Below, piece by piece: positions 1 through 64,000 of a stretch of DNA of 64,000 bases. Each line of letters opens with the position of its first letter. Position 1 is the first letter of the stretch. The DNA comes from Pecten maximus (taxonomy: Eukaryota), in assembly GCF_902652985.1 (NCBI RefSeq), contig NC_047023.1, positions 35,898,001-35,962,000 on the forward strand. Reading direction: 5' to 3'. The notes under the pieces were generated by a model. That model was given only the letters and a program-made list of their open reading frames with translations, was not told the origin of the DNA and searched no databases. The position numbers and the translations under genes were made by a program.

Positions 1-791
1 TTCACCTCGGTTAAATCATGGTCAAGTGAGCTTATATATGTGTCAAGGCATTATGTCCATCTTTAAAACACCAGTTGTCCAGAACCTCTGAACATATTTT
101 GACTTGCTTTGTTCTGAAATTTAGTTGGGCCAATGGGGACACAATGTTCTACAGACAAAGCTTAAAGATATGGAAATAAAGTTACAGAAGCTTGCGGTCC
201 CAATGGGGATTTATAGGGACATTGATCAAATTTGAATTATATGACTATTATAATTTTTTTCATATTAGGCTACCTTGTAAAGATTTGAATACATGACTGT
301 ATTAAATCTTCATATTAGGTGACGTGAACATGTAGCATTTGCTACTGGCAACTACTGATATTTCCAGTTTTCATTCAACCTTTCAAGATAACTACTTAGT
401 ACTTAATCCGACTTTAAATTTTCATTTAGTGTTTTATCTCTTTATGATGTTTATATTTTTGTCTTTTTCCTCTTCCATTTTTCAGCTGCATAGAAATTCT
501 AACTTTCTTCTGATCAGTATGTTGAAAAGGCATTAATTCATTTACCCAGCATGATTGTTCTATTAGTGTCCCATGAATTAAAGTAATAATACCTACCTCT
601 ATTCAAATCCATCAATAGTGAAAATATATATAGGATCTGTAGCAAAAGATAACTGTTACTATAAAGTTGATTTCCATACCAGCAGCTTACCACCAGGAAT
701 GATGGCACATGTTATGGTCCTTTGCTTATTCATGTTAAAATTTGTTTAAACTATTCATCAAAATCTAATTATACATGTCATTGAATTTTAG

Positions 792-987
792 GTGTAAACA
801 GAAATGAAGTGTCTGCCCATGGGATTAACACCCTAGCCACATGGATGTTGGAACATCCACTTGACGTCCAGGAGCCTGAGGAACCAGCCACAAAAGTGGC
901 TCGAGACTCCATATCGGGACAGGAGACAGCCAGTAATATCATCAGTGACTCACAGCCATTAGAAGAGGAAATCAGAGACCCCTACAG
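792..987 (+). CDS. HERC1: HERC1 exon (UBA end, [12 protein letters not shown])
   Basis: ttttag| acceptor, AG|gtatag donor. Confidence 0.8.
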
Positions 988-9900: not shown

Positions 9901-12900
9901 AGATAGAATTTTTTTTGGAAATCAATTTACTAAAGTCTGACACTTTAAATTTGATGATTGTTATGCCTGAACTCTTTTAAGTAAAATATACACCATGATT
10001 GTACATATATCAACACCCCCTCCCTCTCTTCCTTCAACAAACCAGGTAGGTAAATTGGATCAATAAGACTGAGCAGATAGGTATATTGGGTCAGTAAGAC
10101 TGTGGATTGTCTCTCTGTAATACTATTATATCCAGTATAATCAATCTAAAACATCCAAACCGAGTGATAACAACTTGTTCTGGTCAATAGAACAAGAGCT
10201 ACAGATGGGATGTCGAGGTGGGACCCTTATAGATGAGACGGACAACCTCCTCCCTAAGCTTGGCATCACGGACTGGAAACCATGCCCAGACCCCCTCAAA
10301 TTCACGGAGATGGATCCCCTAGGATCCAAGCTGGTTCAGGCTGCAGCCAACACTGGTGCCTCTGTGTGTATGTAGAAATTTGATAGCAAGCTTTAAGTGT
10401 ATTTATTTTGTGAGACTAGTCGGTAACCTTAAAGTAATGTCAAGTAACTTTTTGTGATAAAACTTTGATGGTAGGAGACTTTTTGTTTAGTTATATAGTA
10501 TAGCTAAGCATGGAAGCTGCGCGAGAGAACTAGGTTGAGCTTTTCTGATAATTCTGATTATGATAAAAGATTTTGGAAGTGACTGAGTGAGAAATATTTT
10601 GGTGTAGCATTACTAACAGTAAGTCAGTTACCTCCACAATGTAAGTTTATATTTGTCTGTAACAGGGAGCCTGCCTCGGGCATCTCGTCCCGACAGTAAA
10701 TACCGCACCTTAGGGGAGCAGGCTACTAACCTAAAGACCCCCCGTGACCGACACATCGCTCTCCAGAGGATAACCTCAACCATGCAAGTGATGCTGGCAC
10801 GCAGTATTGTGATGAAAGCTTTGTCTGTCCTGGCTAGTAGGTAAGTAATACTGACACGCAGTATTGTAATGAAAGCTCTATCTGTCCTGGCCAGTATGTG
10901 AGTGATGCTGACACGCAGTATTGTAATGAAAGCTCTATCTGTCCTGGCCAGTAGGTGAGTGATGCTGACACGCAGTATTGTAATGAAAGCTCTGTCTGTC
11001 CTGGCTAGTAGGTAAGTAATACTGACACGCAGTATTGTAATGAAAGCTCTATCTGTCCTGGCCAGTATGTGAGTGATGCTGACACGCAGTATTGTAATGA
11101 AAGCTCTATCTGTCCTGGCCAGTAGGTGAGTGATGCTGACACGCAGTATTGTAATGAAAGCTCTGTCTGTCCTGGCTAGTAGGTAAGTGATACTGACACG
11201 CAGTATTGTGATGAAAACTCTGTCTGTCCCGGCCAGTAGGTGAGTTACATGAAGTTTAAAGTAGGATCTACAACCATATTCACATACAGCCACATTTTCT
11301 TTGATAGGATCCTTGGTCTTTAACACTTTTGAATCAAATGTTGTTGAAGAAAAGAGTGTAGCTCTCCTTGAGGCTCATAATGGGAAGATTAGATATTATC
11401 CTCTTATTATCCTCTTATAACAAATCATAGAAGCCCAGTCATCTTGACTATTTGTGTCAGCTCTAAAGATGTGGTTTCTTTCAATGTTAATTCTCCATAG
11501 GGGTCGGCTTAAAGAATTTTTTTCTCTAAGAGACCATTTTTCTGATATTTGTTACAGTGACTCCTCCTGTAGTTTACCGGCAGCTCTGGAGTACATCGGT
11601 CTGTCTGATATCATGGTGATTGTACAGCTGATGTGTCTGTGTGCGTCGGGTAAAATCAGTAGTCTTCAGTCAAACAGGACACAGGACAGCTTACAACACC
11701 TTACCAAAGCACTTGGCTCTCTGGTCCAAGACAATCAAGTCTCCATGAAACAGCTAGTCCGATTGTGTACCCAGGTGAGAAAAGTGTAGTTACTGTTTAG
11801 TATTAAGCTTCAAAATTGTATAAACATTATTGGAGTTAACCAAGCAGATTTAAATCAAAGAACCATCATATTATTGTAAAGTATCTATTCACGTACATGT
11901 ATAAATTGGCTGGTTATATGCTGAATGAAACAGAGTTTATCATATGACTACCGTTATATACGGTGTCATAAACCCATCACATAAATTTTCTTTATGACAC
12001 TAGTGTAATAACACCTTTCGCTACGCTGATTGGCTGGTTCCGTGAGAACTGTATTCATACGCGTGGGAACGACCTACTTCTTTTTACTACGACTCGTAAA
12101 AATGGCGACTAGTGCTTGTAAACTTTGAAAAAAAATCAACTGAACGACAAATTGGTCTATTAACATAACATATTGTACAATCAAAGATAAATCCAAGATG
12201 TAAACATCCTAAGTTTTTTAATTATATTTATACTATAAGATGTTAAATTAGGCCTGGCAAACATCTATTTTATGACCCCTAGTAACATATTTCAACTCCG
12301 ATAGAAAATTGCGGTTGCGTTGTCCGATGAGACATATCTAGTCTAGATTCTTTTCAAATAAACAAATAATAACATTATTTAATAAAATCCTCATGAAAAA
12401 CGGCAATGTAGAATCTAGTTTGTTACAACTTGCCTTCAACGGTTACTCAGAATAACATGCTGACACTGTCGTCGACAAACACGTGTAATGTCAAAACAAA
12501 CAACACTGCCAACAAATCGGCATCCAAAGTCGCTTTTCACGGCAGTCTGAACACGATGTTCAGTGGGAATATTCACGGTGGAACATTTCACATCTCCATA
12601 AACACCCGCGAGGACGAGGATAAACACAAAGCAGTGAAAAGGCGCCGTACAATGGTTCTGTACGACAGCGACAGCGAATAGACATTTGTACAACGAAGCC
12701 TCCATTATCGCGCCAAGTGACGTCACGGCTTCGTCACATCAAAAACAGTCGCTCATGAACTTTCAAACTAAAATATTTTCCTCATTGTTTCAAACACCAA
12801 GGACAATTTATCTATTATAGATTAAATGAAAAAAATGCTGAAATTTTGTTTTGAGACGTGTATTTAATAAAATGAATCCTTTTCAAGAGTCAGTTGTGTT

Positions 12901-15900
12901 AGAACTATTTCTTCTCTCGTCGGTATAATTGACCTACTTCGAAGGTTCGGGTGATTTGGTTGAGATGTGACGATTCAAGGCAAAAGAGAAAATCAGTTTT
13001 TGATGGGGAACGATGAAAGAAAACGTCATATGATAAAAAGAATCTGTCATTCGTTTCCCTTCATGTTAGATTTATGATACTCGTTTAGAATTTTTTATTT
13101 TTGCTCGCCAGAGGCTCGCAAAAATAAAAAATTCAAAACTCGTATCATAAATCTAATATGAAGGGAAACTCATGACAGATCCTCTATGTATGATAAATTC
13201 TGTTTATTTCAATGCCTTCGCTAGGGATCAAATTCATAACCTCTGGCTTACAAGTCTTACACTCAGTCTTAGTTGTTACTTGTCACCTAGGACAAAATAT
13301 TTTTTTTTTTTTTTTTAAATATGCATCTAATGTTTCTTATTGATAGTTATATTTCTATGAATTAGAAATATGTTTGTCTTTTAGGAATTGTTGTATGCAT
13401 CGATGGGGAAGTGTAGTGGACATCGCAGCAGTGCTGGAGTGGTTCGCATGAAGATCCCTGGGACGTCCAAACTCGCTCCATTTGAACCATCTATGTTCAC
13501 AGTCACACAGTCTCTTGTGTCACTCCTCACAAGGAATGGTTGGAATCGTAAGATGTCAGAGATGTTCGCCACAGGGCACAAATGTAAATAACACTTGCAG
13601 CAAAGTATTTGGGGAGGGGGAGGTTTCATGGGAAATAGGATGTCCAATGGTTTCCCAAAGTTATTTATGCTAAGACATATATGAAGGTCTGTGTTCTATT
13701 CGGTCATGTTCAATCAGAAGCTTTGATTTATGTTTTCTTCATGTTGGCATACTCATCTAACGCAATGGTAAGTCTATGTAAGGTAACTCTTACCCCACCT
13801 AGCGGCAGGATTTATTTGTATATCAAGCTTCAACAAATCAATTGATATATTGATTAAAAAACAACTTATCAATAACCAAGATTGAGAGATTATTTAATGA
13901 CCATGATTGAGAGATTATTTATTTCATTTGGTTAAGGAATAAAATCTACATCAAAATCAACTAAGAATTATCATAACCGTAGTTTAAAAATTCATTTTCC
14001 GAGATGGTCAAATGTGTCAAGATGATGGATGAAAACATCCTACAGAACTGCTTTAATGATAACTAATTTAGTGTGGTACATTTTAGATCAATGTGCTTTT
14101 CTATGTATGCTAGTATAATCAAGCAAAATTATTACAAACTTGATATTGTGTATTTCTATTCATCTAAATGAAAAAACCGACAAAAACTGACGGGAATGAT
14201 CTGGTATTGTTGTTGGCGTTGACAGAGCTGATCTCAAAATGAGGCTATGATGTGATCATATAAACAAAGACAACAAATTTACTTGGTGTTACCTGCTTTA
14301 TTATCCAAGTCTATTACTCTATATAAAGCTAAAATACGGTCATGGATAACCAGTTTATAAAGCTAAAATACGGTCATGGATAACCAGTTTATAAAGCTAA
14401 AATACGGTCATGGATAACCAGTTTATAAAGCTAAAATACGGTCATGGATAACCAGTTTATAAAGCTAAAACACGGTCATGGATAACCAGTTTATAAAGCT
14501 AAAATACGGTCATGGATAACCAGTTTATAAAGCTAAAATACGGTCATGGATAGCCAGTTTATAAAGCTAAAATACGGTCATGGATAACCAGTTTATAAAG
14601 TTAAAATACGGTCATGGATAACCAGTTTATAAAGCTAAAATACGGTCATGGATAACCAGTTTATAAAGCTAAAATACGGTCATGGATAACCAGTTTATAA
14701 AGCTAAAATACGGTCATGGATAGCCAGTTTATAAAGTTAAAATACGGTCATGGATAGCCAGTTTATAAAGCTAAAATACGGTCATGGATAACCAGTTTAT
14801 AAAGCTAAAATACGGTCATGGATAACCAGTTTATAAAGCTAAAATACGGTCATGGATAACCAGTTTATAAAGCTAAAATACGGTCATGGATAACCAGTTT
14901 ATAAAGCTAAAATACGGTCATGGATAACCAGTTTATAAAGCTAAAATACGGTCATGGATAACCAGTTCAGAAACCCACTGTTTACAATATTAAAGTTACC
15001 ATAAAGCATTCATAATCCACAGTTTTTCAATCCGATTAAGGAAAACAATCCATTGTCCATACCCTATTCTGATATTTCAGTCACTTCCCTTCAATAGAGA
15101 ACTCTGTACATGAAATCAAGGCTGCTATGCTTTAAGTTTGTTTCCCCGATTACTTACCTGTTTATTTTCGAAATTGTCTGATGTGATAAATAAATATAAT
15201 TTCAAAATGCTTGAGCAAGTGATGGTCAATATTAAATACCACTTTAATCGGTATTATCCACAACACAGTAATTGGTCACTATTGCCAGGTTTTCTTGTCC
15301 CAACAACTCCTTCTAAACTTGTGGACCGATTGTCACAAAACTTCACAGGAATGTTAGGGAACATGTGTTAGTGTGCATGCAGCTGCTTTAATTGTGAAAT
15401 AATTTGGTTGCCATGGTAACTGGTCACTGTATACAGGTTTTCCCTCTTCGGACAACTTTTCCTTAACTTGTGGACCGATTTTCGCAAAAACCTCACAGGA
15501 ATGGTAGGGAATAGATGAGCATGCAGCTGTTTTAATTCAAAAACTTTTGTTGCTGAGTAACTAGTAGCTATAAACAGGTTTTCAATGGGATTTTTTTTTG
15601 TTGCCATGGTAACAAAGTTATACACATATTATCTCATCAGTCTTTAGGTCAATTTTATTTGAACTTGGTATTTAACTTATTAGTATGCCTGTAATTTAAG
15701 GCATCAGATGTTTCCACAACCATTACTATGGAAACATAATGAAAGTTTCTGATTGATTAAAATTAACACATGTAATTTGGTTGTTATGGTTGCAAATAAG
15801 GGGTAGCAGGGGTATTAGTTAACCATTGACTTACAGTTCAAATTGTTAAACGCTAAATAAACAGTGTTAATAATGATGTTATATGATTATCTTGGTAAAG

Positions 15901-18900
15901 AATGTCTTACCACTTGAGCCAAAATTAGCCTGTCTTTATGGAAATAAATTTGGGAAATTTTCACTTGCCATTTTCTCGATTAAATTCAGTTATACAACAA
16001 ACTGAATATTACATTTATTTTGTGTCATTTTAATACTATTGGAGTTTATTTACTCATTAAATAATTTAGTATTAACTGTTGCTCACTTAAATTGCTTTAG
16101 AATTTTATTGAAAGTCATTAATAAATTTTGTATTTCATTGACTCTTTTATAACATTCTGTATTTATATAATGCAAGATAGGTCTGTCACTGTAGTGCCTG
16201 CTTTACATTTTGTATTATGTTTCAGTCCCTGGACAAGCTGATGACCATGTAGATTCCTCTGCCCACCCAGACAGCCCCAGGGTAGTGCCCCCAACCCCAG
16301 AGGATGAGGGTATCCACCCTCTCCAACTGATAAATGCCCTGGCTGGGTGTGTCCTGTCTACCAAGGTACCCCCCTCACACAAAGAATGGGCTGTCAAGCA
16401 GCTCCTCCAGTCTCTGTCCTCACATGCTGACACCACATCACGATCTGTCAACCAAGTTGACCTTGGTGGTGACCTTCCCCACTGTCCCGTGTCAAAACTT
16501 GAAGGTCACCAGAACAGACTGGCTATATGTAAATGGAGCCAGAAAAAGTCCATGCTTGCTACAAGGTAAGATTTACAATGTGCATGTCGAACACCAAACT
16601 TTTCATATTTTTCTATAATGAACCTATATATCTGTGTTTGTTTTGTCAGAGGCCACAATGGAAAATCACATATTTGGAGTCTGTATGATTATTTGTCGAT
16701 GGATATGATGATACACTACGTATTTATGTATGTTTGTTTTGTCAGTGGCTATGATGCCACACTACGTCTTTGGAGTCTGTATTATATATGTTTGTTTTGT
16801 CAGTGGCTATGAAGCCACACTACGTCTTTTGAGTCTGTATTATATATGTTTGTTTTGTCAGTGGCTATGATGACACACTACGTCTTTTGAGTCTGTATTA
16901 TATATGTTTGTTTTGTCAGTGGCTATGATGCCACACTACGTCTTTGGAGTCTGTATTATATATGTTTGTTTTGTCAGTGGCTATGATGACACATTACGTC
17001 TTTGGAGTCTGTATTATATATGTTTGTTTTGTCACTAGCTATGATGACACACTACGTATTTGGAGTCTGTATTATATATGTTTGTTTTGTCAGTGGCTAT
17101 GATGCCACACTACGTCTTTGGAGTCTGTATTATATATGTTTGTTTTGTCAGTGACTATGATGACACATTACGTCTTTGGAGTCTGTATTATATATGTTTG
17201 TTTTGTCACTAGCTTTGATGACACACTACGTATTTATGTCTGTTTTGTCAGTGGCTATGATGGCACATTACGTATTTGGAGCCTGCCTAACAAGACACAC
17301 CAGTTCCTACAACAAACATGTGTATTTAACCGCGGTGAAGATCTGTCTGGGGAAGACTTGGATGGTCACCTGTTAGGCAATGTCTGCTGGAGTGCTAATG
17401 GCCGCTTACTTGCAGGGTCAATGGACAATCTTGTTAATGTCTGGGGAACTGGAGGTAAGTCAGCTTGTGTTTTTCTTTTAAAGAATTTAACAAAGATGCC
17501 CAGAATGTACAGCTATTAAGTTCTTCTGAACAGTATGCAGTTGAAACTGTTAAAGTCTTTAAATACTTCTTCAGAATAACCAATAATATTAGAGTCATAC
17601 TTCTTCAGAATAACCAATAATATTAGAGTCTTACTTGACCAGTATCATGATGAGGTGAAGGGCCATCAAGTTCCTGAAATGAATGGCATTGAGCCACATT
17701 CAAGGTCAGAGGGGTGAAATGTTTTAAATATTTCATTGATTTTTGAGTAACCAAGAGGTATTTTGGTAACACATTTGTTCAGAACTTTTTAATTGGTTTC
17801 TTTTGAATCATTACAGTTTTAGTGATATAAGAGAACACATTCTATTTAATGTGAAAGATATAGTATGAGCATAAATTAATGAATTATAGGTGCAGAATGA
17901 AATGTGCTATTTCCTATTGGTGCCTAGATTTTATGGCCTCTTAGCCCAATAAGCCACTTAGTGAAGCTATCCACTTTGCGCCCTGCTGTTGCAATCTTCA
18001 TCATTATGATTTCTTCTGAACAATCAAGAAGCCCATAGTAACAACATCATCTCTTCATAAGCTACTACAATAGTACAGGGGAAAATACAGGTCCATTGCT
18101 ATCATAAATGAGAATGTTTTGTCTTTTTTGCTTACTACAGGTACTTTGTACCTCTTGTTATGATTGTACACAGGCTCCAAGGGTATCTTGGATGTTCAGT
18201 GCCACTGGGTGTCGGCCCTGGCCTGGCCCACTCATAGAAGTATGGTTGGTGGTTGTCTTGGTATGACCGTAGACATCCTCCTTGTGGGCAGACTTGATGG
18301 TTCCATTGCTGCAATCGAGATTCTTGGGGGTTCAAGCTTCAATCGCAAAGAACTGGAGCACTGCAGGCGTAAATCAGGTAAGTGATATATTAAGTGACTG
18401 TATTGTTCGCATTAAAAGTGGAATATAAATTTTGTAAGCTGATAAAGTATGTATTGTATAATGTTGTGTATTGTTTTATGTTCAATTTGGTATTTATAGA
18501 GGATATGTGTTGTATGTTGTTCCTTTTGTCAAATACATGTTTCATTTTAACATCTTTAATTTGTTTGTATAGGTAGAACATTCTTCTGAATCATATGTTT
18601 GTCATCATTCTCCTTCAGTAGCTGTGACTATGCTGGCATGGTTTGATGAAGACAGAAACTTTGCGGCAGCATACAGTGATGGAGTGGTCATTATTGCTAA
18701 CCGCTCGGACTTTGAAACTCCAGTCACTGCAGAGGCTCACCAGGTAGAAGTTTTCACATGTAGAAAAAAAATCTCGATGTTAAGACTTGGTGTTTAAGCA
18801 TTCAAAGCTATACAATCCCTGTTAAAATAACTATTGTGATATCAATAAGTAATTAACATGTAAACCTGAACAATTCTGTAACTCCAGAATTCTATCAGTG

Positions 18901-21900
18901 GTCTGTCCTGGGACCCCACTGGTCATCTACTGCTGACCTGTGCAGAGAAGGACAACTGTCTGAAGGTTTGGCTGCCTGGACGGGAGGGATTATCCTTGCT
19001 CTACGTTTTACCTGACTCAGCTCCAGTCTGTTCAGCCCTGTGGTGCAGCATTCCAGGCAAAGGGGAGACTAAACACCTGTTGTTGTCAAGGTAATATAGG
19101 TCATTTATACACGGGAGACTAAACATGTTGTTGTCATGGTAATGTAGGTCAGTTATATAGGGGAGACTAAACACCTGTTGTTGTCATGGTAATGTAGGTC
19201 AGTTATATAGGGGAGACTAAACACCTGTTGTTGTCAAGGTAATGTAGGTCAGTTATACACGGGAGACTAAACACCTGTTGTTGTCAAGGTAATGTAGGTC
19301 ATTTATACACGGGAGACTAAACACCTGTTGTTGTCATGGTAATGTAGGTAAGTTACATAGGGGAGACTAAACACCTGTTGTTGTCATGGTAATGTAGGTC
19401 AGTTACATAGGGGAGACTAAACACCTTTTGTTGTTTTAAAAGTTCATTGCTGTTCAGTTTAGTGGTCAGGGGAACCAACAAATAGTATCAAATATTTGCA
19501 CATACCAGTTGTTGTTTTTTGGTTGCAGTGGTAATGAGGCCGGAGTGGTGTCAATGTGGACAGTGCCACAGATCCAGTCGACCAGTCAGACACAAATCAC
19601 ACCCTTCGGTATCAGAAGGGAGACAGTGTATGAAGTTAGTATTGTTGTGTGAAGTTAGAGCTTTCTGGAATAGGGGTTTTTGTTGGGTTTTCTTTTTCAT
19701 GTTCAAACTGGGCAGTTAAAGAGAGATAAATCCTATTGTATTTCTGATGGTAAATAAAAACTTCAATTAAACCAAATGAATTCAAATTTTCAAAATATCA
19801 TATTAAACAAACTATGAATAGTGCTAATTCATATTTTCCTTCTAATAAGACATGAATATTGATGAAGTAACCTTAAAATCTAACAGAGAATTTATTGTGA
19901 GCACTGCTCATTATCTCTAGATTCCAATGAGAATATAACGACCAGTCTATAATGTTGATACAGAATCAGGACATGGAGTGTATGGAGGAGGTGAGAACTC
20001 TTAAACCCGTGAGGATTTTACAGGGACATATGACCTCTGTAACCTCCATGACCTTCAGCCCTGATGGACTTATGCTGGCCTCAGGATGTACGCGGGGATG
20101 GGTCAACATCTGGTGTCTTTCTGTGAGTAGTTCTGGTACTAAGTCCAGGCTGAATTGTCAACTTTATGATCTAACACCTGCCTCATAGTAATCAGGTTTT
20201 GGATTTCAGAATCAGTCATACTTTTATTTGTTTGCCTTTCTAAGTACATTTAACAGTTTCTGTTAATTCATGTATGCTGTAGTTGAATTATATATCATTC
20301 AACTTTAATCCCACTACATGTTTTCTAGAACATTTTGCCTGATACAAAACAATGTAATATTGTGTTGTTTGTACTTGTGATTGTTTTACTGACAACTTGG
20401 AGATAAAATGGCAGTTAACATTGGGAATCTCAGTGTTGTTTGTGGTCATGATAAAAATGCAATGATATATATTATTATTAAACACTGTTGTTTATATGGA
20501 GGTAATGACCCAATAATTAAAGTCAGTTGCACCATGTGACCATTTGCTTCGCTGGATTGTCCTTATTAGGAACAGCTTGCTTTGATGATTGTACCAGGGT
20601 ACATGAATGAAGAACAGGGTGATCGTATATCTGAATGGCTATTTTCCATCAACAGGAATCAGAATTTTTTATAGTGAGATAATAAATGTTGCTCATTGTG
20701 AAAATTAATTGTGATATTTCTACAGGATGGCTGTCTACTACAAACACACATAGAGAATGGAATGGTCAATGATCTCTGCTGGTATGCAGACTATGGACTA
20801 GCTGTTTGTTTCAATAGAATTAAGGTCAGATATCACATATTAATTAACTTTCATATTAATAATATTTAGATTTTATATGTAATTTATTCTCAAATAAGCC
20901 CTTTCCCAAAATGAGAAAGTGTTTAAGCATGGGGAGGGCTTATTTGTGAACCAATTTTAGCTTATTATTGTATCTAAAATAATGATTATTTTTAAAAGAA
21001 GAAGGGGCAAGGGCTTATTTGTGGGTAGGGTCTTATTTGCTGATAAATACATATACATGACTATATTGTATATTATAAATTTGCACTTAATTATCCGGCC
21101 AATTAATGCAAAGGAGAATAGTAAAGTGTACTCCATTTGCATATTTCCAGAGTAAAAGGTGACCTGCCTCATGGCTCACTTGATATGATAGACTACTATG
21201 AATTTTAATGGATTACTATAATAACAAAACTGATTGATTGGCAGGATGTAGTGATACTACACTATACAGCTGAGCTCCATCAGAAGTCACGATGTGTTGC
21301 CATGGCCAGAAAGAAGCTCAAACAGCAAGGCATTGTGGGATTGAACCAGGCTCCTTGCCTTCAGAGCCTTCTACAACAGCTGCCAACTATGTTGCACGAC
21401 CAATATCTGTATGAAAAGGTACTCGGTCTTAACTAGTTCTCCATTGTCAAATTAGTGTTTTAACTCGTAATACAAACATAGATAATAAATATGTGACTTA
21501 TACATCAACACAGAAGTTATTTTTGATCACATGTTCAGATGCTAGTCAGATAGTAACTGTAGTCTTGTAATTTATCAAGTTTTGAATATGTCTTTTTCAG
21601 CCAATCGTGATGTTCTGATACATGAATTTCTCAGCTTCTGCCGATTTTGTTGTTGTCAATACATAGTATTTCTGTATCAGCCAATCAGCCCACATACATT
21701 AATTTTGTCTACACCAGTACTTGTCCTGTTTCACCCAATAATTGTGTCAAATATGTTACTTTGTAAATTTGTTTCACTCATTTAGGGAGTGAAATTTTTT
21801 CTTTGAGCCAATCATAGTCTCAGATACATTTCTGTAATTTATTTCAGCCAATCATGGTCTTAGATACATTTCTGTAATTCATTTCGCCCATCATGGTCTC

Positions 21901-30900: not shown

Positions 30901-33900
30901 CCCAATATGGGAAATTGAGGCAATACCTTCAACTCGCTACTAGTCATAAAGTTATGAATGGATTTGAACCCAATTTGGTCAGAACATACATGCCATATCT
31001 CCCTTATTTTCAAGTCCTTTATTTCCTCCCGGGAGGAGAGCCCAAATTCCCGTATTTGTAATTCCCTCCGGTATTTTTACCGACACCAATTTTGTTTACA
31101 ATTCAGTAGTTTTTCTCGCGAGATTTAATGAGATTTGGCTAAATTTAGCGATCACATGATCCATCTGTTCATGTGATCACTCAATCAAAATGGCACCTGT
31201 TGGACACAGCTTTCACACGAAGCTCTGGCTAGTGTAATGTTTGCGCTAGAATATCTATCACCATGAAATAACTTTAACCCTCTTTGCTAACAGACTTGAA
31301 TTATTTTTGTTTTCTTTTAGGACCATACTTTGATGAAGGTAATTGATACAGAGCCTGGTCAGACGCAAAATCACACGTGTTTTTCATATAACATGTGTAT
31401 CGTTGATCAGTGATAGCAAGATGAAATCCGATATTTTCTTTTAGAAAACTATCAAAATTAACACATCTGTTGGTCGTAGTGGTCAATTATGATGTTTACA
31501 ATGACTGTACCGTCCATGACAGAGATAATATACAAAATCTAGAATGATCGTATCATCGTGATAAGATTTACTGCAGTCTCCTAACATGAACATCTTCAGT
31601 TCTCATGACTTCATGTATACACTTGCACACTTGGAATATTTTTATATCTAAATGGTCCAACATAAGGGATCCCACAGGACATTTCATGGTGATTTTTATA
31701 ACTGATGTGTACCCTCAGAGTGGATCAAGCTTTCTAATTTTAAGAAAATCCAAACTGATCAATGATTAATTTGCTTGTCTTGATCTTTAGCTACATGTAA
31801 TTATAATATACCCTTTTCAAATGCTGTTATGTAATATGCATAAAGCTGTGAAACTTTTTGTGTTACATAAAAAAATAAAAAAATAATTTCATATCATCAG
31901 AATCTGAATGTATACTTATTGCAATTTTTACCTTATACAACTTTTTGTTGTTTGCATATACAATATGATTAATATCCAAAATAAAGATAAATATTCTTTT
32001 TCACTTTCAAAATTAGTTCATTGCTTTAAAATTGAGTAAAAATGTTGATATTCATGTCTCGCACAAATCTCCCTTATTTTAGGCAAAACTCCCTTAAAAT
32101 AATCATTAATCTCCCTTATTGGTCTCCTGAAAATATGGCATGTATGTCAGGAACATCCTTGGCAGAAGGGGATCAGATTTTGCATAAATGGTGACTCTGA
32201 CCCCCGAGGGGCCAAAGGGGCGGTGCCCAATAGGGGAAATAGAGGTAATTCCTTTAAATTGCTACTTGTCAGAAACATCTTGGGGGAAGTGAAACAGATT
32301 TTGCATTAATGATGACTTTGATCCCCAAGGGGCCAAATGGGCAGGGCCCCATAGGGAAATAAACGTAATTCATTTAAATTGCTACTAGTCATAAAGTGAT
32401 GAATGCATGTTCTAAAAAAAATTCTTGAGGTCTTTCAGACCCTTTAGAGAGTCTGGACTTTGTTATTTCTTTAAAGCAGTTGGGATCCACATACTATAAC
32501 TATATATAGCATTGTTTGAGATTGACAAATAAAACGAATTGAACATGAACATTATTTTGACATTTGGTCTAATCTAACCAGGTGAGCGATACAGGCCCCA
32601 TGGGCCTCTTGTTTTTAATGTTTATCCAATTTTAAAATTTTATAGAAAAAAAAACGAATAAAAAGACTGCTTAAAAAGTGCCATTTAATTTTATTCTGTC
32701 ATACCCAAACGGAAACTTTTACTGGATAATTCATTTCTTTAAACAAATGAGTACTGATATTCCAAATATTCTTCAGAGGAATTCACAATTATTAGAGGAT
32801 TAAGACAAAGACTTGTGGCATACTGTATTGAACTAATTATAAGACCCTTATTTTAATGATATTGTTTTTGTCAAAATGCCGTCAAGAAAGTGCCAGCTTT
32901 AAGTTTTACAATTTTCCTCTCTCTCTCTTTTATTTTGCTTCTAATATGTACTAATAAAAGATTGTTTGAATTGCAACAGATCGCCTGATTGGTCAGCCAG
33001 AGTTCAGAGCCCGTGGTCACATGAAGCCTCAAGAGGTGACAGCCTTGTCGGGATATTATGTAGAGGACGTAGTGTGTGGAGCTGAACACACTCTGGCGTT
33101 AACTTGTACTGGAGATGTGTGGGCCTGGGGTAACAACAGTGAGGGCCAACTAGGGATAGGTCATACCAACACACCTGTCCGCGAACCACAACTGGTACCC
33201 TGTCTCACGGGCAAAAACGTCAAACAGGTAGGTTATCTACAACTGGTACCCTGTCTCACAGGCAATATCGTCAAACAGGTAGGTTATCTACAACTGGTAC
33301 CCTGTCTCACTGGCAATATCGTCAAACAGGTAGGTTATCTACAACTGGTACCCTGTCTCACTGGCAATATCGTCAAACAGGTACGTCATCTAAATCTACA
33401 GCTGGTACCCTGTCTCACAGGCAATATCGTCAAACAGGTAGGTTATCTACAACTGGTACCCTGTCTCACAGGCAATATCGTTAAACAGGTACGTCATCTA
33501 CAACTGGTACCCTGTCTCACTGGCAATATCGTCAAACAGGTAGGTCATCTACAACTGGTACCCTGTCTCACAGGCAATATCGTCAAACAGGTAGGTTATC
33601 TACAACTGGTACCCTGTCTCACAGGCAATATCGTCAAACAGGTAGGTTATCTACAACTGGTACCCTGTCTCACGGGCAATATCGTCAAACAGGTACATGA
33701 TCTAGAGCTACAACTGGTACCCTGTCTCACAGGCAATATCGTCAAACAGGTAGGTTATCTACAACTGGTACCCTGTCTCACGGGCAATATCGTCAAACAG
33801 GTACGTCATCTAAATCTACAACTGGTACCCTGTCTCACAGGCAATATCGTCAAACAGGTAGGTTATCTACAACTGGTACCCTGTCTCACAGGCAATATCG

Positions 33901-36900
33901 TCAAACAGGTAGGTTATCTACAACTGGTACCCTGTCTCACGGGCAATATCGTCAAACAGGTACATGATCTAGAGCTACAACTGGTACCCTGTCTCACAGG
34001 CAATATCGTCAAACAGGTAGGTTATCTACAACTGGTACCCTGTCTCACGGGCAATATCGTCAAACAGGTACGTCATCTAAATCTACAGCTGGTACCCTGT
34101 CTCACAGGCAATATCGTCAAACAGGTAGGTTATCTACAACTGGTACCCTGTCTCACTGGCAATATCGTCAAACAGGTACGTCATCTAAATCTACAGCTGG
34201 TACCCTGTCTCACAGGCAATATCGTCAAACAGGTAGGTTATCTACAACTGGTACCCTGTCTCACAGGCAATATCGTCAAACAGGTAGGTTATCTACAACT
34301 GGTACCCTGTCTCACGGGCAATATCGTCAAACAGGTAGGTTATCTACAACTGGTACCCTGTCTCACAGGCAATATCGTCAAACAGGTACGTCATCTACAA
34401 CTGGTACCCTGTCTCACGGGCAAAAACGTCAAACAGGTACGTCATCTACAACTGGTACCCTGTCTCACGGGCAAAAACGTCAAACAGGTACGTCATCTAG
34501 AGCTACTACTGGTACCCTGTCTCACTGGCAAAAACGTCAAACAGGTACGTTATCTACCACTGGTACCCTGTCTCACGGGCAAAAACGTCAAACAGATACA
34601 TGATCTAGAACTATAACTGGTACAAAAAAATTCGTCAGAGAAATCGTCAGCATTCGAAAGCTAAATTAACCAATACTCCTGCCTCTTGGAACAAATTTAG
34701 AACTATTCGGAACGAAGTGATTTCTTCTATCCGAGAGGCAAAAGAAAAATACCTTTCTAAACTCCAATCATCCTTAGTTAATAAGTCTATTCCGCCCGGT
34801 AAATGGTGGCGTATTGCCAAATCAGTTATGAATCTAAAAAACAAAAATGAAACAGATGCCCCTTTGGTTATAAACGGAGAGTTAAAATTTCACCCTATTG
34901 ACAAAGCTGAATCTTTCAACGACTATTTTACGTCTATATCTGTTTCCAATAAGAATGCTGACGATTTACCACCTGATTGTCCTCAACCTCAACAGACCTT
35001 CTCTACTATCAATATTACCGAACAAGACATTATAGATCAGTTACGTCTTCTCAACGCAAGTAAACCTGTAGGTCCGGATACTATTCCCCCTAAATTTATT
35101 AAAGGTATTTCTAATTCGCTTATTAAACCACTGCATGTAATATTTAACAAGTCTATTTCTACTGGTGTTCTTCCGACTGTATGGAAACATTCTAATGTCA
35201 CTCCAATTTATAAAGGCAAAGGTTTACGATCTGATCCATCGAATTTTCGACCAATCTCTGTTACTCCTATTTTTAGTAAAATATTAGAAAAAATTGTCTT
35301 CAAGTACATGTTTAATTTTCTATCGGAGAATAATATCATTTCCAGAAATCAATCGGGGTTTTTACCTAAAGATTCAACTACTTTTCAACTATTGAATATA
35401 TATGACACAATTGTAAAACATTTGGATAAGGGTAAAGAGGCAAGAATGGTTTTCTGCGATATAAGTAAAGCTTTTGACCGAGTTTGGCATGATGGTCTAA
35501 TATATAAATTGAAAAAATATGGTATCGGCAGAAATATGATTAAGTGGTTTTCATCTTATTTAAACGGTAGGATGCAGAGAGTGGTCGTCGATGGATTCAG
35601 ATCTTCTTGGAAAACCATTCAGGCAGGTGTGCCCCAAGGTTCCGTGTTGGGTCCTTATCTATTTTTATTATTATATAAATGATATATGTGAAAATTTAAC
35701 TTCAGATTTGAAACTGTTTGCTGATGACACATCTTTATATACACTTATAGAGGGAGACCGACAGGAATCTGCAAATATTTTAAATTCTGATCTCAGGAAA
35801 ATTTCCTCATGGGCAGACGCCTGGGGAATTGTTTTTAATCCAGAAAAAACAGTAGCTCTTCTTTTTTCAAGTCGGGTTGACTCCCAGACTTTACATCCTG
35901 ATCTGGTCTTTAATAACCTTACTATCAAAAATGTAACAAATCACAAACATCTTGGTCTCTTCTATAATTCTATGGCTAACTGGTCGACTCATATCAATTT
36001 TATTTATGAAAAAGCATATAAAAGGATAAATATACTCAGGATGTTGAAATACAAAATCGATAGAAGGTCTCTTACAACTATCTATACTTCTTTTATTCGG
36101 CCTATCCTAGAATATGCTAGTATTGTGTGGTCTAACTGTACCCAGGCAGAATGTAACCTCTTGGAGTCAATTCAACTTGATGCAATACGTATAATTACTG
36201 GCTTAAGAAAAGGAACTAGTCATTCAGTATTATATTATGAAACTGGTATTGTACCTCTCATTGCTAGAAGACATCTACATCAAAATATTACTTTTTATAA
36301 TATTTTTAACAATAACTGTCCGCATCATATCACTGACTTACTACGACCTTTTATTAACACCAATGATGTCTATAATTTTCGCCATGCTAGATTGTTTAAT
36401 ATTCCTGCCTTGAGAACTCAGCTATACAGCAATAGTTTTTTTCCGTCCTTGATGTCTGAATGGAACAGTCCGTCCTGTCCGTTTCCCTCTATGTCTTCCG
36501 TACGTGAAATAAAAAAGGAATGCTTACAAGCTGGTATTACAGATAATTTCCCACTGTGTTCTGAAACATTTAAATATTCTGGCGAAAGAAAAATCAATAT
36601 TATAATATGTCAGTTAAGAAATTCCGCTAGTAATCTAAACTCTGATTTATTTTATTCTCACTTATGTGATAGTCCTGCCTGCCGGTGTGGTTTTCCGATT
36701 GAAGATTCCTATCACTATTTTCTTTATTATCCTCTCTATACTAATCAAAGAATTCGCCTAAGTAACTCCATTGCTGTATTAGATGTTAACATTCCTCTTT
36801 CTATCGAAACTTTCCTCTATGGATATAATAGTCATGTTTTTAATTCAAATGATATGTTATTGAAGATCGTACAGGAATACATTAGAGATACCAAACGCTT

Positions 36901-39900
36901 TATATAAGATATTAATAACTAATTATAATTAATTGAGTTGATTTTAGATTTATTAATTAAGATGTGAAAAATTATTAATCTAAGAGGCATTTTGACATGT
37001 CTAACATACGCTTCATGATTTATTTATATTCAACTTGCGAGACTCTCCGAAATTGTCTGTTTAATCACTATTATCTTTGCTTTACTACATATATTTTCTA
37101 GTTGTGTATTTTATGTATTGTACTGTTATCAATGTAATTATCGGGAGAGGGCTAATATAGGCATTGCCTGTTGCCCATTTCCCTTTGAATTAACATCTTC
37201 AATAAAATATTCTGAAATGAAATGAAACTGGTACACTATCTCACCAGCAAAAACATCAAACAGGTACTTTATCCAATATATCACAACTGGTGCCATGTCT
37301 AATCTACAAAAAATGTCAAACAGGTATGTTATCTGCCAGAGACTTACAAATTGTGGCCTTATAATGTTTCAGAAAAGCAAGCATAAAGCATTTTAGCCTT
37401 CATACAAAAAAACCCTCTAACTGATGGGGTCCAGATCAGTAAATTTAGATTTACAGTCTTGGTATTGGATGATTTGACTTGAGTTCTTGATAAGGACATT
37501 TGAGTGTACATTGTACTTTCAGCGGTTGAAAGCTATTTAAATCCTTTTGTTACATTTTTTTTTTTGACAGACCATTAATATAAAAATACATAATGTAGTC
37601 AAGTATTTCTGACATTCTTCACAAGGTTATTCGGCGGTTGCTAGGGAAAAGATAAATCGATCTTACACAGGGTGGGTAAAGACAGCCGGCATGCGCTATA
37701 TGACGCTGCTCACAATAATGTAACATCATCATTTTACGTTGAGTAACCAAGTCGTAAATGATGACGTCATTAATTTTGACGCACATTCCAAGGAGCAATG
37801 AAGATGGCGTGATGAAAAACTTTCATAAAAACTTATGTTTGGTTGCAAGTATGTGAGAAAAATAATCAATCATGGGTCTGTTCCGCAAACAAGGATATCA
37901 ACCCTCGTGTAAGAGTTTGGCTGGCCAGCACTCGGCAAGCCTCGTGCTGACTGGCCAAACTCTTACGCTCGGGTAGAGATATCCCTGTCCACGGAACAGA
38001 CCCATGATAGATTCTATTAATCAACTTGGTTGTATTCATTTCCATGGCTCCATGAATGTTCCATGGAAAATTTTCTGATAAATTGTTAAAGCTACTATCA
38101 AATGAAGTTGGAAGTTGAAATTGGAGTCTGATGATGACTGGTGCACACAAGCCATTAAGTCGTGATTGTTGTATTATTAATAAAAGAGCAAAATATTTTT
38201 GTTACATTCAAAATAGAATGTGAATTCTCTCTCAGATATCAGCTGGTAGGACACACAGTGCCTCGTGGACAGCCCAGCCTCCTCCCCAGAGGAAACCAGG
38301 TGTGCCCCTCCCACTACAGCTAGGCATCCCAGAGTGTGTGCCACCTCAGTACACAGCCTTGACTGGAGTCAGCCTGGAGGACATACAGGGGAGATTCAAG
38401 CTCCTCCATCACTTCTCTGACCTTATATACTCCTCCTGGCGACTACTTCCACTTACTTGTACACAGGTGCGTATCTATAAGCAAAATCTGCTTACATTAA
38501 ACAAAATATCTTATGAGATGTTATTACTCTTTGAAAACTTTTTATCTGTCACTTTCACCAAAACAGAAGGATATTAAATTGGGTTTGTCCAGCTGTCTGT
38601 CCATCTGTCTGTCCCACTTTGTTTCCATGTAATAACTGCATCAAATGTTGACAGATTTTCTTCAAACTTGGTAACACGATTTGAAACTTGAAGGGCTCGT
38701 CCAAGTTGAATTGCCACTTCACTTTTGTTGGACTTTATTTGAGGGGATTATAGCTCCTTCATTAAATAAAAATGTTGTTTTTTGCCATTTCTCTGAAATA
38801 ACTGAAACAATTGTTAACAGATATTCTTCAAACTTGATAACAAGATTAAATGCCTTAAGGGCTCATTTGACTAAGTTATGGCCCCTTAAGGGAGTTTGAT
38901 TGCCGAATATTATTTTGTAGAGTTATGTCCCCTTGATTAATTAAAAATTTTGATTTCTGCTGTTTCCATGCAACTCCCACAGATATTATCTGATTATCAT
39001 CAAACTTAGTAACAGAATTATCATTCCTTGATTTATGAAAATCATTACTTACTTGCCGTTAGGTAACTCTCAAATATTTTTTGAAAGTCTTGCAAAATCT
39101 ATTTTACTTAATCCTGTTAAACATGTTCAATAAAACATCTGACTTCTGTATATTAGGCTTTGCTTTTTTGTTCAAGTTTCAAGCAATACATTATGGCTGA
39201 AAAGAATTCATCATTCTGTCAAGTTATAATGATATGTTTAGTCCTAACTTCACAAATGTTACCCTACAGTATGTCAGAAAAGCGAATTCGCTTGTTATTC
39301 TGAATATACTGTCGGTGATCAAGCATCTTAAAGAAAGTCTGCAGGACAACATACAATGTAATACATTGTAGTTATACACTGTCAGGTACCTGGGAAATAG
39401 ATGTGGATAGCATTATACTTTACAAACTCATCTGACACCTGATTTAACTTATAACTTAGCGTGGTGGATGTACTTCTTAATCTCTAAATGGATTGAATTG
39501 ATCTATCAGTATAAATCTGTAAAGTCAGTATAAATCTGTAAAGTCAGTATAAATCTGTAAAGTCAGTATAAATCTGTAAAGTCAGTATAAATCTGTAAAG
39601 TATCATTTCTTACAATCACCAGGTTCTGTATGTTACAAAATATATTGGGACTACCACTTAAAAGCAGCCAAGCAAAAGGCTTGTTATCAAAAGACCAAGG
39701 TGAAATTATATACTCAGGTATGAGGACTGTATTTTTATTTTTATCAATAAGAATATCAGTATTTGCGTCCACAGTCTGCCCTTACTCGCTATGAGGCTGG
39801 AATGATTGGAATCATTGATGGAAGATTGCGCCCACTCCTGTCTCCCAGGGTCTACACACTGCCCCTTGTCAGGGCCATAGGCAAGACCATGGTACAAGGC

Positions 39901-42900
39901 AAAAACTACGGCCCACAGATCACAGTCAAACGCCTGTCTACCAGGTATTAAGAACTCTTTCCACTTCATAGTCTTAAGCCTCTTTTAAAAATATTTAATT
40001 AAATAAGGCAGAGTCGTGATTACTTTAAAAGATTAAATCTATATGTCATAAGATAGTTTACAACATTTTTGACATAAGTGAACTTACATCAGAATTCATT
40101 ATACAATTTATGTTAATTTCTCTATTTAGGGGTAAGAAATGTAAGAGAACTTACATCAGAATTCATTACACAATTTGTATTAATTTCTCTATTTAGGGGT
40201 AAGAAATGTAAGCCGGTGTTCTCCCAGATTGCCCAGCAGGTTGTCAAACTGAAGGCAGAAGACTTAAGACTACCTGCTCGGGCCTGGAAGGTAAAACTGA
40301 TAGGAGAAGGAGCAGATGATGCTGGAGGTGTTTTTGACGATACCATTACAGAGATGTGTCAAGTAAGTAGACTTGTGTTTTAATCCTTGGTTTTTATCCT
40401 AGATTGTATCTGGGAAATTTATCCTGGTCTTAATTTAAAGGATATCTCATCGTTTGTTTGGATCCTCCTGTTTTTAGTGTTATGATACATGAGCTTTGTT
40501 TTTAGAAGATTTTTATATATTAATGCTTTCTTTGATAGGAGTTAGAGATGGGAGTAGTCCCGGTATTAATAACAACTCCAAATGCTCAGAACGACTCTGG
40601 AAACAATAGAGATAGGTAAGTATTACATGTACTTACATTAGTACAAGACTTAAGATTCACCAGTATCTACAAATACCAACTCACTATACTTTCCATTATC
40701 AATTCACTATGTCAGTATACATTGTACATAGTGTTAATACACTGTATAGGTACAAGTAGTTTTTTATTATCATTTGTCCTCCATCAAGGTTGTTGTTGAA
40801 CCCGTCACTGACTTCGGAGGAGGACCTGGCACTGTTTAAGTTCCTTGGTATCCTGTTTGGAGTGGCTATCAGGACAAAAAAGCCCCTGGACCTGCACTTG
40901 GCACCATGTGTCTGGAAGTTATTAGTCGGCATTCCACTGAAACATGAGGACCTGGAGGAGGTAAGTATTTACCTGTCAACATCCTCCATCAAACATGAGA
41001 ACCTAGAGGAGGTAAATGTGTTAATGGTCAATATCCTCCACTCAAACACAAAAACCAAGGGGAGGTAAGTAAGTTACTGTTCAACATTCTCCACTCAAAC
41101 ACGAGAACCAAGGGGAGGTAAGTAAGTTACTGGTCAATATCCTCCACTCAAACACGAGAACCAAGGGGAGGTAAGTAAGTTACTGGTCAACATCCTCCAC
41201 TCAAACACGAGAACCAAGGGGAGGTAAGTATTTACCTGCCAATATCCTCCATCAAACACGAGGACCAAGGGGAGGTAAGTAAGTTACTGGTCAATATCCT
41301 CCACTCAAACAAGAGAACCAAGGGGAGGTAAGTAAGTTACTGGTCAATATCCTCCACTCAAACACAAGAATTAAGCCGAGGTAAGTATATTGCTGGTCAA
41401 TATCATCCATCAAACATGAGAACCAAGGAGAGGTAAGTAAGTTACTGGTCAATATCCTCCACTCAAACACAAGAACCAAGGGGAGGTAAGTAAGTTACTG
41501 GTCAATATCCTCCATCAAACACGAGAACCAAGGGGAGGTAAGTATGTTACTGGTCAACATCCTCCACTCAAACACGAGAACCAAGGGGAGGTAAGTAAGT
41601 TACTGGTCAATATCCTCCACTCAAACACGAGGACCAAGGGGAGGTAAGTAAGTTACTGGTCAATATCCTCCATCAAACATGAGGACCAAGGGGAGGTAAG
41701 TATGTTACTGGTCAACATCCTCCACTCAAACACAAGGACCTGGAGGGTTTAGGTCAGCATCAGTCAACATTCCTCTAACATAGCGGGATCTTTATAATTA
41801 TTAACATCCTCCGCTCCTAAGCTTTAACCTAAAGACAGATGGTTGGTGTCCCAATCAAAGTTCTTTACTTAGTCTCCATTTTTAACTAAGGAAACTATTT
41901 ATAATAAGATATAACTATGTGTATAGAGACTGTTTATCTTAGATGTACTGTGTGTCCTCATTATAGATAGGGACATGACGTAATTGTATATTTACATTGT
42001 ATATTTTCTCTGTTTACAGAATATATTTACATGAAGATCTTTTGTATGAAGAGATTACATGAAATTATTGTGTGTTCACAGGTAGACCATCTATATATAC
42101 AGAGCCTGATTGGTATATCTGACATACAGAAGAGTGGAGTCAATGAGACAAACTTCCATGAGGTACACACTACTGTTTACATGACATTGACATTTACCAT
42201 GGTGGCATGTAATACTGAACTTTTTATCCTTTGTCATCTATCATCTGAGCCGAGTTGTTCAAAAGATGATTAGGCTAATAATAGTTTAACAACTATTTTC
42301 AAATCATGATCAAATGGATTCTGGTAACATTAACCTGACAAAAGTTATGGAACTTCTAAATATCTCTACAACTTGTCATTTTTAACGAAGATGTACTCAC
42401 AAATTTTGTAAGAAATAGAATCAAATATTTCACTAATCAAGTAATTAAGTTAACCATCTTTTGAACAACTTGGCCCTGTTGATTTAGCATGTAAATAATC
42501 AGATACTAGTTGCACATGGTGCATAGTTAACTGTAAAATTCCTTTTGCCTTTAAAACTTTAAATTTGAATATATGTCTTCCTCATTTTATTCGTAATTCG
42601 TCTGAACTTTAAATCTCTCTCTCAGATGGCTGTTAAAGTCCCATAGGGCACTTGTTAGCCAGTGAGCTTATGCCATGACATCAGTCATACAGCATCCATT
42701 AACATTTCCTTTAAATCATTACTAGTCCTGAACACCTGAATGGATTTTGATTACCTGAAGGTAAACTTAGTCTGGAGCATTATTTAGCAAATGAGATCTA
42801 ATGTTGTAAATGAAGGATGTGGCTCCCTGGGGTCCAATAGGGAAAATTGAGGTAAACCATTTAAAATGCTACTAGTCCTGAAGGACTGAATGAATATTGA

Positions 42901-61607: not shown

Positions 61608-64000
<2,393 letters not shown>

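Follow-up and report, generated by a model that had tools for sequence, protein, structure and literature searches.

The 3' part of HERC1 in the scallop Pecten maximus raises the question of how transcripts are spliced correctly, and how such a gene arose, when seven of its splice sites lie inside tandem copies of their own exon/intron junctions. The window analysed is a stretch of 64,000 nucleotides of contig NC_047023.1, in which the host gene was identified by tblastn chains to HERC1 of the Elysia-like P0144, Anneissia (P0022), a fish (P0036) and others; one chain of 62 HSPs spans P0144 residues 9-5095 and shows the gene to be colinear with full-length HERC1. RCC1, WD40 and HECT domains were found in the exon translations with Pfam, the exons being searched singly by reference and not joined into a spliced model. 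The complete gene is 105 kb long, beginning ~57.3 kb before the first base of the window and ending at window position 47487. The window holds ~36 of its introns, so that the proportion given in a first-pass annotation of this DNA (arrays at seven of 70 splice sites) is about right.

All seven arrays were recovered by Tandem Repeats Finder (TRF) where the first-pass annotation had placed them, with coordinates agreeing to within 1 nt, units of 40-67 bp, 2-27 copies and 88-94% matches (Table 1). Reading of the sequence upholds the description of the units as independent local copies: every one consists of the edge of an exon plus the adjoining splice signal, and the exon parts fall in exons that align to HERC1 homologues. 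Dozens of intact GT or AG decoys had been claimed and ~67 were counted; they match the splice consensus as closely as the authentic sites do, and the sequence thus gives no account of the preference for the final acceptor in an array. By a rough measure, inner units are mutually alike at 0.88-0.96, while the authentic copy scores 0.69-0.91 against them, and in the HECT-exon donor array the inner units have derived changes in common that are absent from the first and last copies. The exon fraction of the array unit spans 0.07-0.93 evenly, indicating no fixed phase between unit boundaries and the junction.

Table 1. Features of the window, 5' to 3'; decoys are array copies that keep the GT or AG of the authentic site.
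Feature	Position	Strand	Junction and unit	Decoys	Evidence
3' part of HERC1 orthologue, Pecten maximus	1..47490	+			tblastn chains, Pfam on exon translations
Comparison minisatellite, complex 42/45-bp, 4.5-kb	4442..8979	+	starts 12 nt past donor (GT at 4430); donor not included		TRF
Donor array, 57 bp x 8.1	10787..11245	+	last exon base 10840; unit ~54 nt exon + GTA/GTG	7 of 7	TRF, sequence reading, tblastn
Acceptor array, 58 bp, ~9.5 copies	16724..17277	+	authentic AG 17250-17251; first exon base 17252; unit ~24 nt intron tail + ~34 nt WD40 exon start	7 of 9	TRF, sequence reading, tblastn, RNA contigs
Donor array, 50 bp x 7.5	19061..19434	+	last exon base 19090; unit ~30 nt exon + 20 nt intron	6 of 6	TRF, sequence reading, RNA contigs
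Acceptor array, 40 bp x 10.5	21798..22216	+	authentic AG 22204-22205; first exon base 22206; unit ~24 nt intron + 16 nt exon	8; AG gone from 2 copies	TRF, sequence reading, tblastn, RNA contigs
Donor array, 51 bp x 26.8	33188..34595	+	last exon base 33227 (RCC1 exon); unit ~39 nt exon + 12 nt intron; in frame, stop-free	25	TRF, sequence reading, tblastn, Pfam
Non-LTR retrotransposon fragment	34609..36904	+			RVT_1, E = 7.7e-24
Acceptor duplication, 67 bp x 2.1	40075..40212	+	authentic AG 40195-40196; first exon base 40197	1, acceptor identical to authentic one	TRF, sequence reading, tblastn
Donor array, 53 bp x 15.4	40933..41740	+	last exon base 40960 (HECT exon); unit ~28 nt exon + 25 nt intron	13	TRF, sequence reading, tblastn
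Comparison minisatellite, 44-bp	46016..46876	+	stops 22 nt short of acceptor (AG at 46898-46899); acceptor not included		TRF

Homologue coordinates are contiguous over all seven array-bearing introns in tblastn comparisons with Anneissia, Elysia, fish and others, which bears out the claim that the protein is completed by the copy nearest the exon. At three of the seven arrays the exon-proximal sites are also joined in RNA contigs from three studies (16563>17250, 19088>19527 and 21416>22204), and at donor 19090 the sole joint in three RNA runs leaves from the first copy, i.e. the most upstream donor. The proximal junction at the other four is placed solely by homologue contiguity: P0068 residue 1329 at donor 10840, with homology resuming at 11562; P0022 residue 2647 at donor 33227, resuming at 38227; P0022 residue 2780, contiguous, at acceptor 40196; and P0019 residues 1018/1017 at donor 40960, resuming at 42079. 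No decoy joint is listed in the RNA contigs of the three studies, which are blind to rare isoforms. The first-pass annotation also described a strict polarity, with donor arrays extending downstream and acceptor arrays upstream; use of the proximal copy stands, but the polarity merely restates which site is spliced.

Arrays of this kind have been described before. Amphioxus (lancelet) mirages were reportedly first described by Canestro et al. in 2002. They are found in the amphioxus genes for Adh3, troponin C (TnC), the globins BflGb6/9 and PGBD5, where they leave splicing undisturbed (PMC3087553, PMC3902484). The scallop arrays are 'mirage'-type minisatellites: in HERC1, head-to-tail units, of a length within the ~10-160 bp typical of mirages, hold part of an exon and the end of the intron with its splice signal, the authentic copy is the one next to the exon and the inner units change in concert, by the same rough measure as above. 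Amphioxus mirages are likewise built of units of tens to ~160 bp, many of which retain AG or GT, with normal mRNA, concerted evolution of the inner units and distinct boundary units. Unlike the cephalochordate cases, those of the scallop occur in a bivalve mollusc, at far higher density (seven in 47 kb and 12 per gene), with copies to ~98 and without a linked new intron position. A similar arrangement exists in human F7 intron 7 (IVS7), a 37-bp VNTR of 5-8 copies whose first element spans the exon/intron boundary; among its identical 5' sites only the most upstream is used, a mechanism tested with 50 constructs (PMC1557585). The scallop donor array at 19090 uses its most upstream donor in the same way in RNA contigs, rare use being beyond their reach, whereas F7 is confined to donors at one locus. 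Acceptors are amplified as well in the scallop, and from such an array it is the final copy that is used. The amphioxus and F7 cases contradict the earlier suggestion that such a system was undescribed, and the literature yielded no report of such junction arrays for molluscs.

The model of Rogers and later work, as cited in the amphioxus literature (PMC3087553), derives intron gain and internal gene duplication from tandem duplication of AGGT-bearing segments. Splice signals travel with the duplication in both settings, but the scallop arrays only lengthen old introns and create none. The exon limits of HERC1, in protein coordinates, are identical in P. maximus and another invertebrate, which indicates that the introns are old, and intron creation by tandem duplication does not fit the acceptor array at 17251, where a related bivalve has the intron without the array.

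The favoured reading, to which a probability of roughly 0.65 is given, is that the junction arrays are mirage-type minisatellites, mostly a neutral by-product and tolerated since the exon-proximal site wins. A short tandem duplication of 20-70 bp, probably arising by replication slippage or unequal exchange, would by chance straddle an exon/intron boundary, after which its additional copies would multiply as in any intronic minisatellite. The spliceosome would join the exon-proximal copy (the first donor or the last acceptor), leaving the mRNA unchanged, and most mis-splicing at decoys would give a frameshift or stop and presumably be cleared by nonsense-mediated decay (NMD). Arrays may thus persist through doing little harm, a near-neutrality judged from contigs in which rare isoforms would go unseen. 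Frames and unit lengths predict a stop or frameshift from decoy use in ten of the 12 arrays of the whole gene; for example, read-through at donor 10840 reaches TAA 2 nt past the junction.

The raw material for such a process is abundant. In scallop genomes tandem repeats form the largest class of repeat (PMC10225492), ~45 tandem arrays lie within the 105 kb of HERC1, and 84 arrays make up 25% of 155 kb in twelve myosin genes. Ordinary scallop intronic minisatellites resemble the junction arrays in unit size, copy number, identity and the filling of short introns, and are unlike them in that the junction-array unit includes coding sequence together with a functional splice signal. Many arrays merely abut a splice site (12-64 nt away) or end at the dinucleotide itself, and many large ones lie far from any junction. 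One candidate, at 95696-96202 in full coordinates, was rejected as an acceptor array and counted as non-straddling, its units lacking the 25 nt at the 3' end of the intron. With arrays collapsed, host introns measure 143-460 nt for most junction arrays, and where introns are short and minisatellites many, a sizeable share of seeds will overlap a junction by position alone. Two origins had been proposed, a duplication process biased towards junctions or duplications everywhere that survive where the proximal site wins. The second fits best because minisatellites fill introns, the proportion of exon in the unit varies so widely and uniform seeding explains a third to half of the cases; junction bias is neither needed nor shown.

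A mutational process targeted to splice junctions, which would make the boundaries true hot spots of tandem duplication, is the strongest competitor and is nevertheless unlikely. It might begin with polymerase pausing, R-loops or breaks where splicing takes place co-transcriptionally, and proceed by template switching. The test of enrichment proposed earlier was carried out in sampled introns (the window, 100 kb upstream of it and 155 kb of myosin genes) against a null model in which array seeds are uniform within each host intron. In the window, seven junction arrays were observed and 2.6 expected, an excess of 2.7-fold (P = 0.003) that is biased upwards because the pattern was the reason for choosing this window. 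Upstream HERC1, outside the flagged window, adds five further junction arrays, making 12 in the whole gene, with 21-57-bp units in as many as ~98 copies. Pooling the sampled introns gives 13 observed against 6.1-6.8 expected (~2-fold, P = 0.002-0.006), but the unflagged sequence shows a 1.7-fold excess that falls short of significance (P = 0.10), and the myosin genes alone show one of 1.25-fold. Myosin exon limits were taken from Pfam matches only, so that junction arrays at unmapped exons would escape the count; five arrays there reach the splice dinucleotide, with 0-1 exon nt (one donor array with ~11 nt at most). Several of the myosin arrays start or stop precisely at GT or AG, as a junction-aimed process might produce, and non-straddling arrays lean weakly to intron ends (mean relative offset 0.40, KS P = 0.07). 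Against this, unit boundaries lack phasing, large arrays occur far from junctions and the uniform-seeding null accounts for a third to half of the junction arrays. Genome-wide, triplets of the donor consensus AGGTRAGT at a spacing of 15-45 nt number 19,650, which is 5.4 times the 3,637 of the pattern in reverse; a few long arrays dominate these counts. This ratio is not robust, because a second motif of equal composition was matched 7,890 times and its reverse 16,511 times, compared with the 19,650 of the donor motif. The fuller proposal, that junctions are real germ-line hot spots of tandem duplication, e.g. via splicing-coupled polymerase pausing or breaks, and that thousands of 'splice-site satellites' exist, is a shade more doubtful again.

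Comparison with relatives, also proposed earlier, was made and speaks to the age of the arrays. A related bivalve (~80% exon DNA identity) lacks the array of acceptor 17251 in its orthologous intron, so that this array looks young. In another invertebrate, the orthologous 20 kb (the 3' part of the gene) has no array touching a junction; it does have a polymorphic 32-bp array, 34 nt past an orthologous donor, with 1 versus 20.8 perfect copies, which shows a fresh expansion out of single-copy intron DNA. This ordinary intronic array of another species is the sole direct copy-number difference seen.

The first-pass annotation regarded the arrays as a regulatory reservoir of alternative splice sites with NMD-tunable dosage, for which no support was found: the RNA contigs of the three studies list proximal joints only and the intron of the related bivalve is array-free. 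That selection keeps the arrays as a length-variable store of such sites, giving NMD-tuned HERC1 dosage or in-frame inserts, is accordingly very improbable. The consensus-like context of the decoy GT and AG dinucleotides would suit such a store, as would the two donor arrays that open in frame (21 bp and 51 bp) and the divisibility by three of five of the seven donor units. However, the other invertebrate has no junction array in the orthologous 3' part either, arrays of like kind adjoin junctions without including them, and the concerted drift of inner units leads away from the coding copy. To stay open in frame, the 51-bp array requires just four stop-free intron codons, copied 27 times, and an insert from it would land within an RCC1 blade. 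A variable protein insert from this array was considered and rejected, since those four codons suffice to explain it and it has no RNA support.

That the arrays are artefacts of long-read assembly has next to no likelihood, as their units differ by 5-12% in fixed patterns, their lengths of 0.1-1.4 kb in the window are far exceeded by PacBio reads (PMC7191990), and DNA run X3, from a separate study, contains 71% of sampled words and yields contigs that pass from unique flanks into the arrays on both sides, with k-mer depth within arrays 3-7 times that of the flanks (~7 times at 19061..19434). Nothing was found that speaks for an artefact; short-read contigs do break within the arrays and collapse them, as is to be expected.

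Correct splicing beside as many as dozens of sequence-identical decoys amounts to a natural experiment on splice-site choice, with a bearing on 5'-to-3' scanning for donors and on the less understood matter of why the last acceptor is chosen. Should the pattern prove genome-wide in P. maximus, scallops would offer thousands of cases compared with a handful in amphioxus, and if junctions did prove to be hot spots, co-transcriptional splicing would leave a mutational signature in DNA. Furthermore, such arrays will mislead gene predictors in bivalve genomes through long false open frames, of which the 548-codon read-through at 32970-34613 is an example, as well as short-read variant calling. The non-LTR retrotransposon fragment, whose reverse transcriptase is split between two shifted frames, shares its intron with the 51-bp donor array and follows it directly.

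Seven HERC1 splice sites in the window are amplified into tandem arrays that copy exon edge and splice site together, as the first-pass annotation had proposed. Tandem Repeats Finder resolved about 16 separate arrays with a period of at least 15 bp within the gene part of the window, and these seven, when their sequence is read, consist of units that join the last 16-54 nt of an exon to 3-51 nt of adjoining intron including the GT (donor arrays, named here by their units of 57, 50, 51 and 53 bp) or the first 14-34 nt of an exon to 3-51 nt of adjoining intron including the AG (acceptor arrays, 58, 40 and 67 bp). There is no relatedness among the seven units, in agreement with the same annotation. 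The host gene is HERC1: 62 colinear tblastn matches reach from residue 9 to residue 5095 of a molluscan HERC1 (5097 residues), and the exons have RCC1, WD40 and HECT signatures. The mitochondrial COI of this Pecten maximus assembly matches other Pectinidae best, with 89% to Argopecten. Homologue residues continue gap-free from the exon edge into the next exon at 7/7 array junctions of the window, which fixes the authentic sites and confirms that it is the exon-proximal copy that completes the protein. Counted as copies of the 20-nt junction, approximately 67 decoys retain the GT or AG dinucleotide, so the "dozens" of the earlier estimate are borne out, and many have a context identical to that of the real site.

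Four studies supplied one DNA run and three RNA runs, which were compared with window positions 16400-22380, a stretch including three arrays. Independent DNA contigs extend from unique flank into each of the three, where summed k-mer depth is 3-7x that of the flanks, as collapsed tandem copies would give; the array structure is real and striking. RNA contigs from 3/3 studies contain the joints 16563>17250, 19088>19527 and 21416>22204, i.e. the last acceptor, first donor and last acceptor of the respective arrays, demonstrating that the proximal site is used at these three. No decoy joint is listed in the RNA contigs of the three studies over 16400-22380, although such contigs drop rare forms and low-level decoy use is therefore possible; a few low-depth pieces from RNA run X6 fall inside the donor array and could represent either pre-mRNA or decoy use. 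That exon definition lets the last among many equal acceptors win is a guess. Within the same region, two versions of one intron joint reflect alternative splicing over 3 nt or else a difference between alleles, and an intronic segment of high depth is a dispersed, SINE/MITE-like repeat also found in transcripts.

Arrays of this kind have been published before. Boundary minisatellites of the mirage type are known in amphioxus, with earlier cases cited in Adh3 and other loci; either exon boundary can be hit, splicing is undisturbed, and the units undergo concerted evolution that leaves out those at the edges (PMC3087553). Pavelitz et al. added the PGBD5 and troponin C cases (PMC3902484). In human F7 the exon boundary falls inside the first unit of the intron 7 VNTR, and identical pseudo-sites are silent, oriented scanning picking the most upstream site (PMC1557585). 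Our literature search found no report of such arrays in molluscs, and the HERC1 arrays add a new, molluscan case of unusual density to a known kind.

Extending the analysis by 100 kb upstream of the window gave a HERC1 gene of about 105 kb with around 45 arrays. Five further arrays straddle junctions in this upstream part: donor arrays of 57 bp (34 copies, at an RCC1 exon edge), 21 bp x 98 and 45 bp, and acceptor arrays of 47 bp x 19 and 25 bp x 22. Others merely abut splice sites at 12-64 nt, one of them reaching 7.8 kb and 179 units. From predicted reading frames, decoy use would shift the frame in 5/5 acceptor units (58, 40, 67, 47 and 25 bp) and, among the donors, in the 50-bp and 53-bp units. 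Three in-frame donor arrays would run into a stop within 1-8 nt. The 21-bp and 51-bp donor arrays alone are open on read-through. For the 51-bp array, an open frame takes just four intron codons that contain no stop, multiplied 27 times, and so by itself says nothing on function. Its long read-through frame can mislead ORF-based gene callers.

Among the repeat classes of scallop genomes, tandem repeats are the largest (PMC10225492), and twelve myosin genes (155 kb) contain 84 arrays that make up 25% of the sequence. With every array reduced to a single unit, most junction arrays lie in introns of no more than 143-460 nt, so a random 50-bp seed would often overlap a boundary. With the straddling chance of each array within its own intron summed over arrays, 2.6 junction arrays were expected in the window and 7 observed (P = 0.003), against 1.9 and 4 in the upstream part of HERC1, unseen in the first-pass annotation (P = 0.09), and 1.6 and 2 in myosin introns (P = 0.5). 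Capping intron length at 600 nt, which allows for later transposon insertions, changed the result little. The unflagged sequence together gives 3.5 expected and 6 observed (P = 0.10), and everything pooled gives 6.1 and 13 (P = 0.002). Non-straddling arrays lean weakly to intron ends (KS P = 0.07), and the exon share of units is evenly spread from 0.07 to 0.93, hence seeds show no phasing with the boundary. Counted across the genome, one motif exceeded its reversed pattern 5.4-fold, but a second, composition-matched pair of motifs reached counts nearly as high, so that the 5.4-fold ratio is not robust. Position alone explains a third to half of the junction arrays, on top of which junctions may be favoured up to about 2-fold.

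The check across related species was made for the 58-bp acceptor array. Both flanking exons are covered by a Logan contig of a bivalve whose exon DNA is around 80% identical, and its orthologous intron (~305 nt) is free of repeats; an array is likewise missing from this intron in two more distant relatives. In a further invertebrate, no array touches a junction across the orthologous 20 kb of HERC1. Two metagenome contigs show that a 32-mer starting 34 nt after its donor orthologous to window 33227 is present as 20.8 perfect copies in one individual and single-copy in another, a very recent, polymorphic expansion out of ordinary intron sequence; arrays can therefore grow beside the same donor without a junction in the unit. 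In the scallop arrays, inner units are 0.88-0.96 alike by a rough measure, compared with 0.69-0.91 to the authentic copy, and bases lost from all inner copies of the 53-bp array survive in its first and last copies, as expected for one early duplication followed by internal amplification.

A near-neutral account of the junction arrays is best supported. Minisatellites would be born frequently in short introns, sometimes including the boundary; an array would be tolerated when the exon-proximal site is used, and splicing errors would mostly be cleared by nonsense-mediated decay. How the arrays arise by mutation, their neutrality and the part played by decay are what we infer.

Coordinates of splice sites and other features (window positions unless prefixed; G000:C2, C5 and C9 are contigs of the scallop assembly, L-numbers fetched stretches)
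Feature	Position	Strand	Details
Authentic donors	after bases 10840, 19090, 33227, 40960	+	homologue residue continuity
Authentic acceptors	before bases 17252, 22206, 40197	+	homologue residue continuity
Variable intron joint	18373-18618		18373>18615 in RNA run X8; 18375>18618 plus one extra letter in RNA runs X6, X14
Dispersed repeat	20880-21050		depth 10-20x flanks in DNA and RNA contigs, many loose ends
Read-through frame	32970-34613	+	548 codons, through 51-bp array
Non-LTR retrotransposon fragment	34609-36904	+	RVT_1 across two shifted frames
Related short ORFs	30801-31058, 32103-32306		common peptide motif
Related short ORFs	5815-6021, 30789-31076	-	common peptide motif
Ankyrin-repeat ORF	52271-54238	-	656 codons
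Second ankyrin copy	61611-62807	-	truncated
Repeated ORFs	53479-55191, 62048-63763
Satellite	59553-60864		155 bp, 8.5 copies, 93% matches
Giant minisatellite, upstream HERC1 intron	G000:C9:35855534-35863354		44 bp x 179, 7.8 kb, starts 64 nt past donor
Second giant minisatellite, upstream HERC1 intron	G000:C9:35864613-35869334		41 bp x 119, 4.7 kb
Array in upstream HERC1 intron	85988-86991, stretch including upstream sequence		155 bp
Myosin gene	G000:C5:46329401-46345600		16.2 kb, 62% minisatellite
Myosin gene array	G000:C2:24751996-24753076 (L025:1696-2776)		39 bp x 28
32-mer, further invertebrate	L033:8902-9566; L032:9550-9581		array; single copy

In the G000:C5 myosin gene, a 22-bp x 36 array fills an 838-nt intron, leaving just 23 nt at the donor end and 13 nt at the acceptor end. 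The donor GT is the very start of the G000:C2 myosin array, and each unit therefore opens with GTATGT. Among neighbouring elements in the window, the retrotransposon fragment lies 14 nt downstream of the 51-bp donor array and accounts for about half the length of intron 33228-38226. The related short ORFs lie in several HERC1 introns and, recurring on both strands, form a dispersed element family. Further downstream, the repeated ORFs indicate that a block of a few kb was duplicated about 8.57 kb downstream, and the 155-bp satellite lies between the two ankyrin copies.
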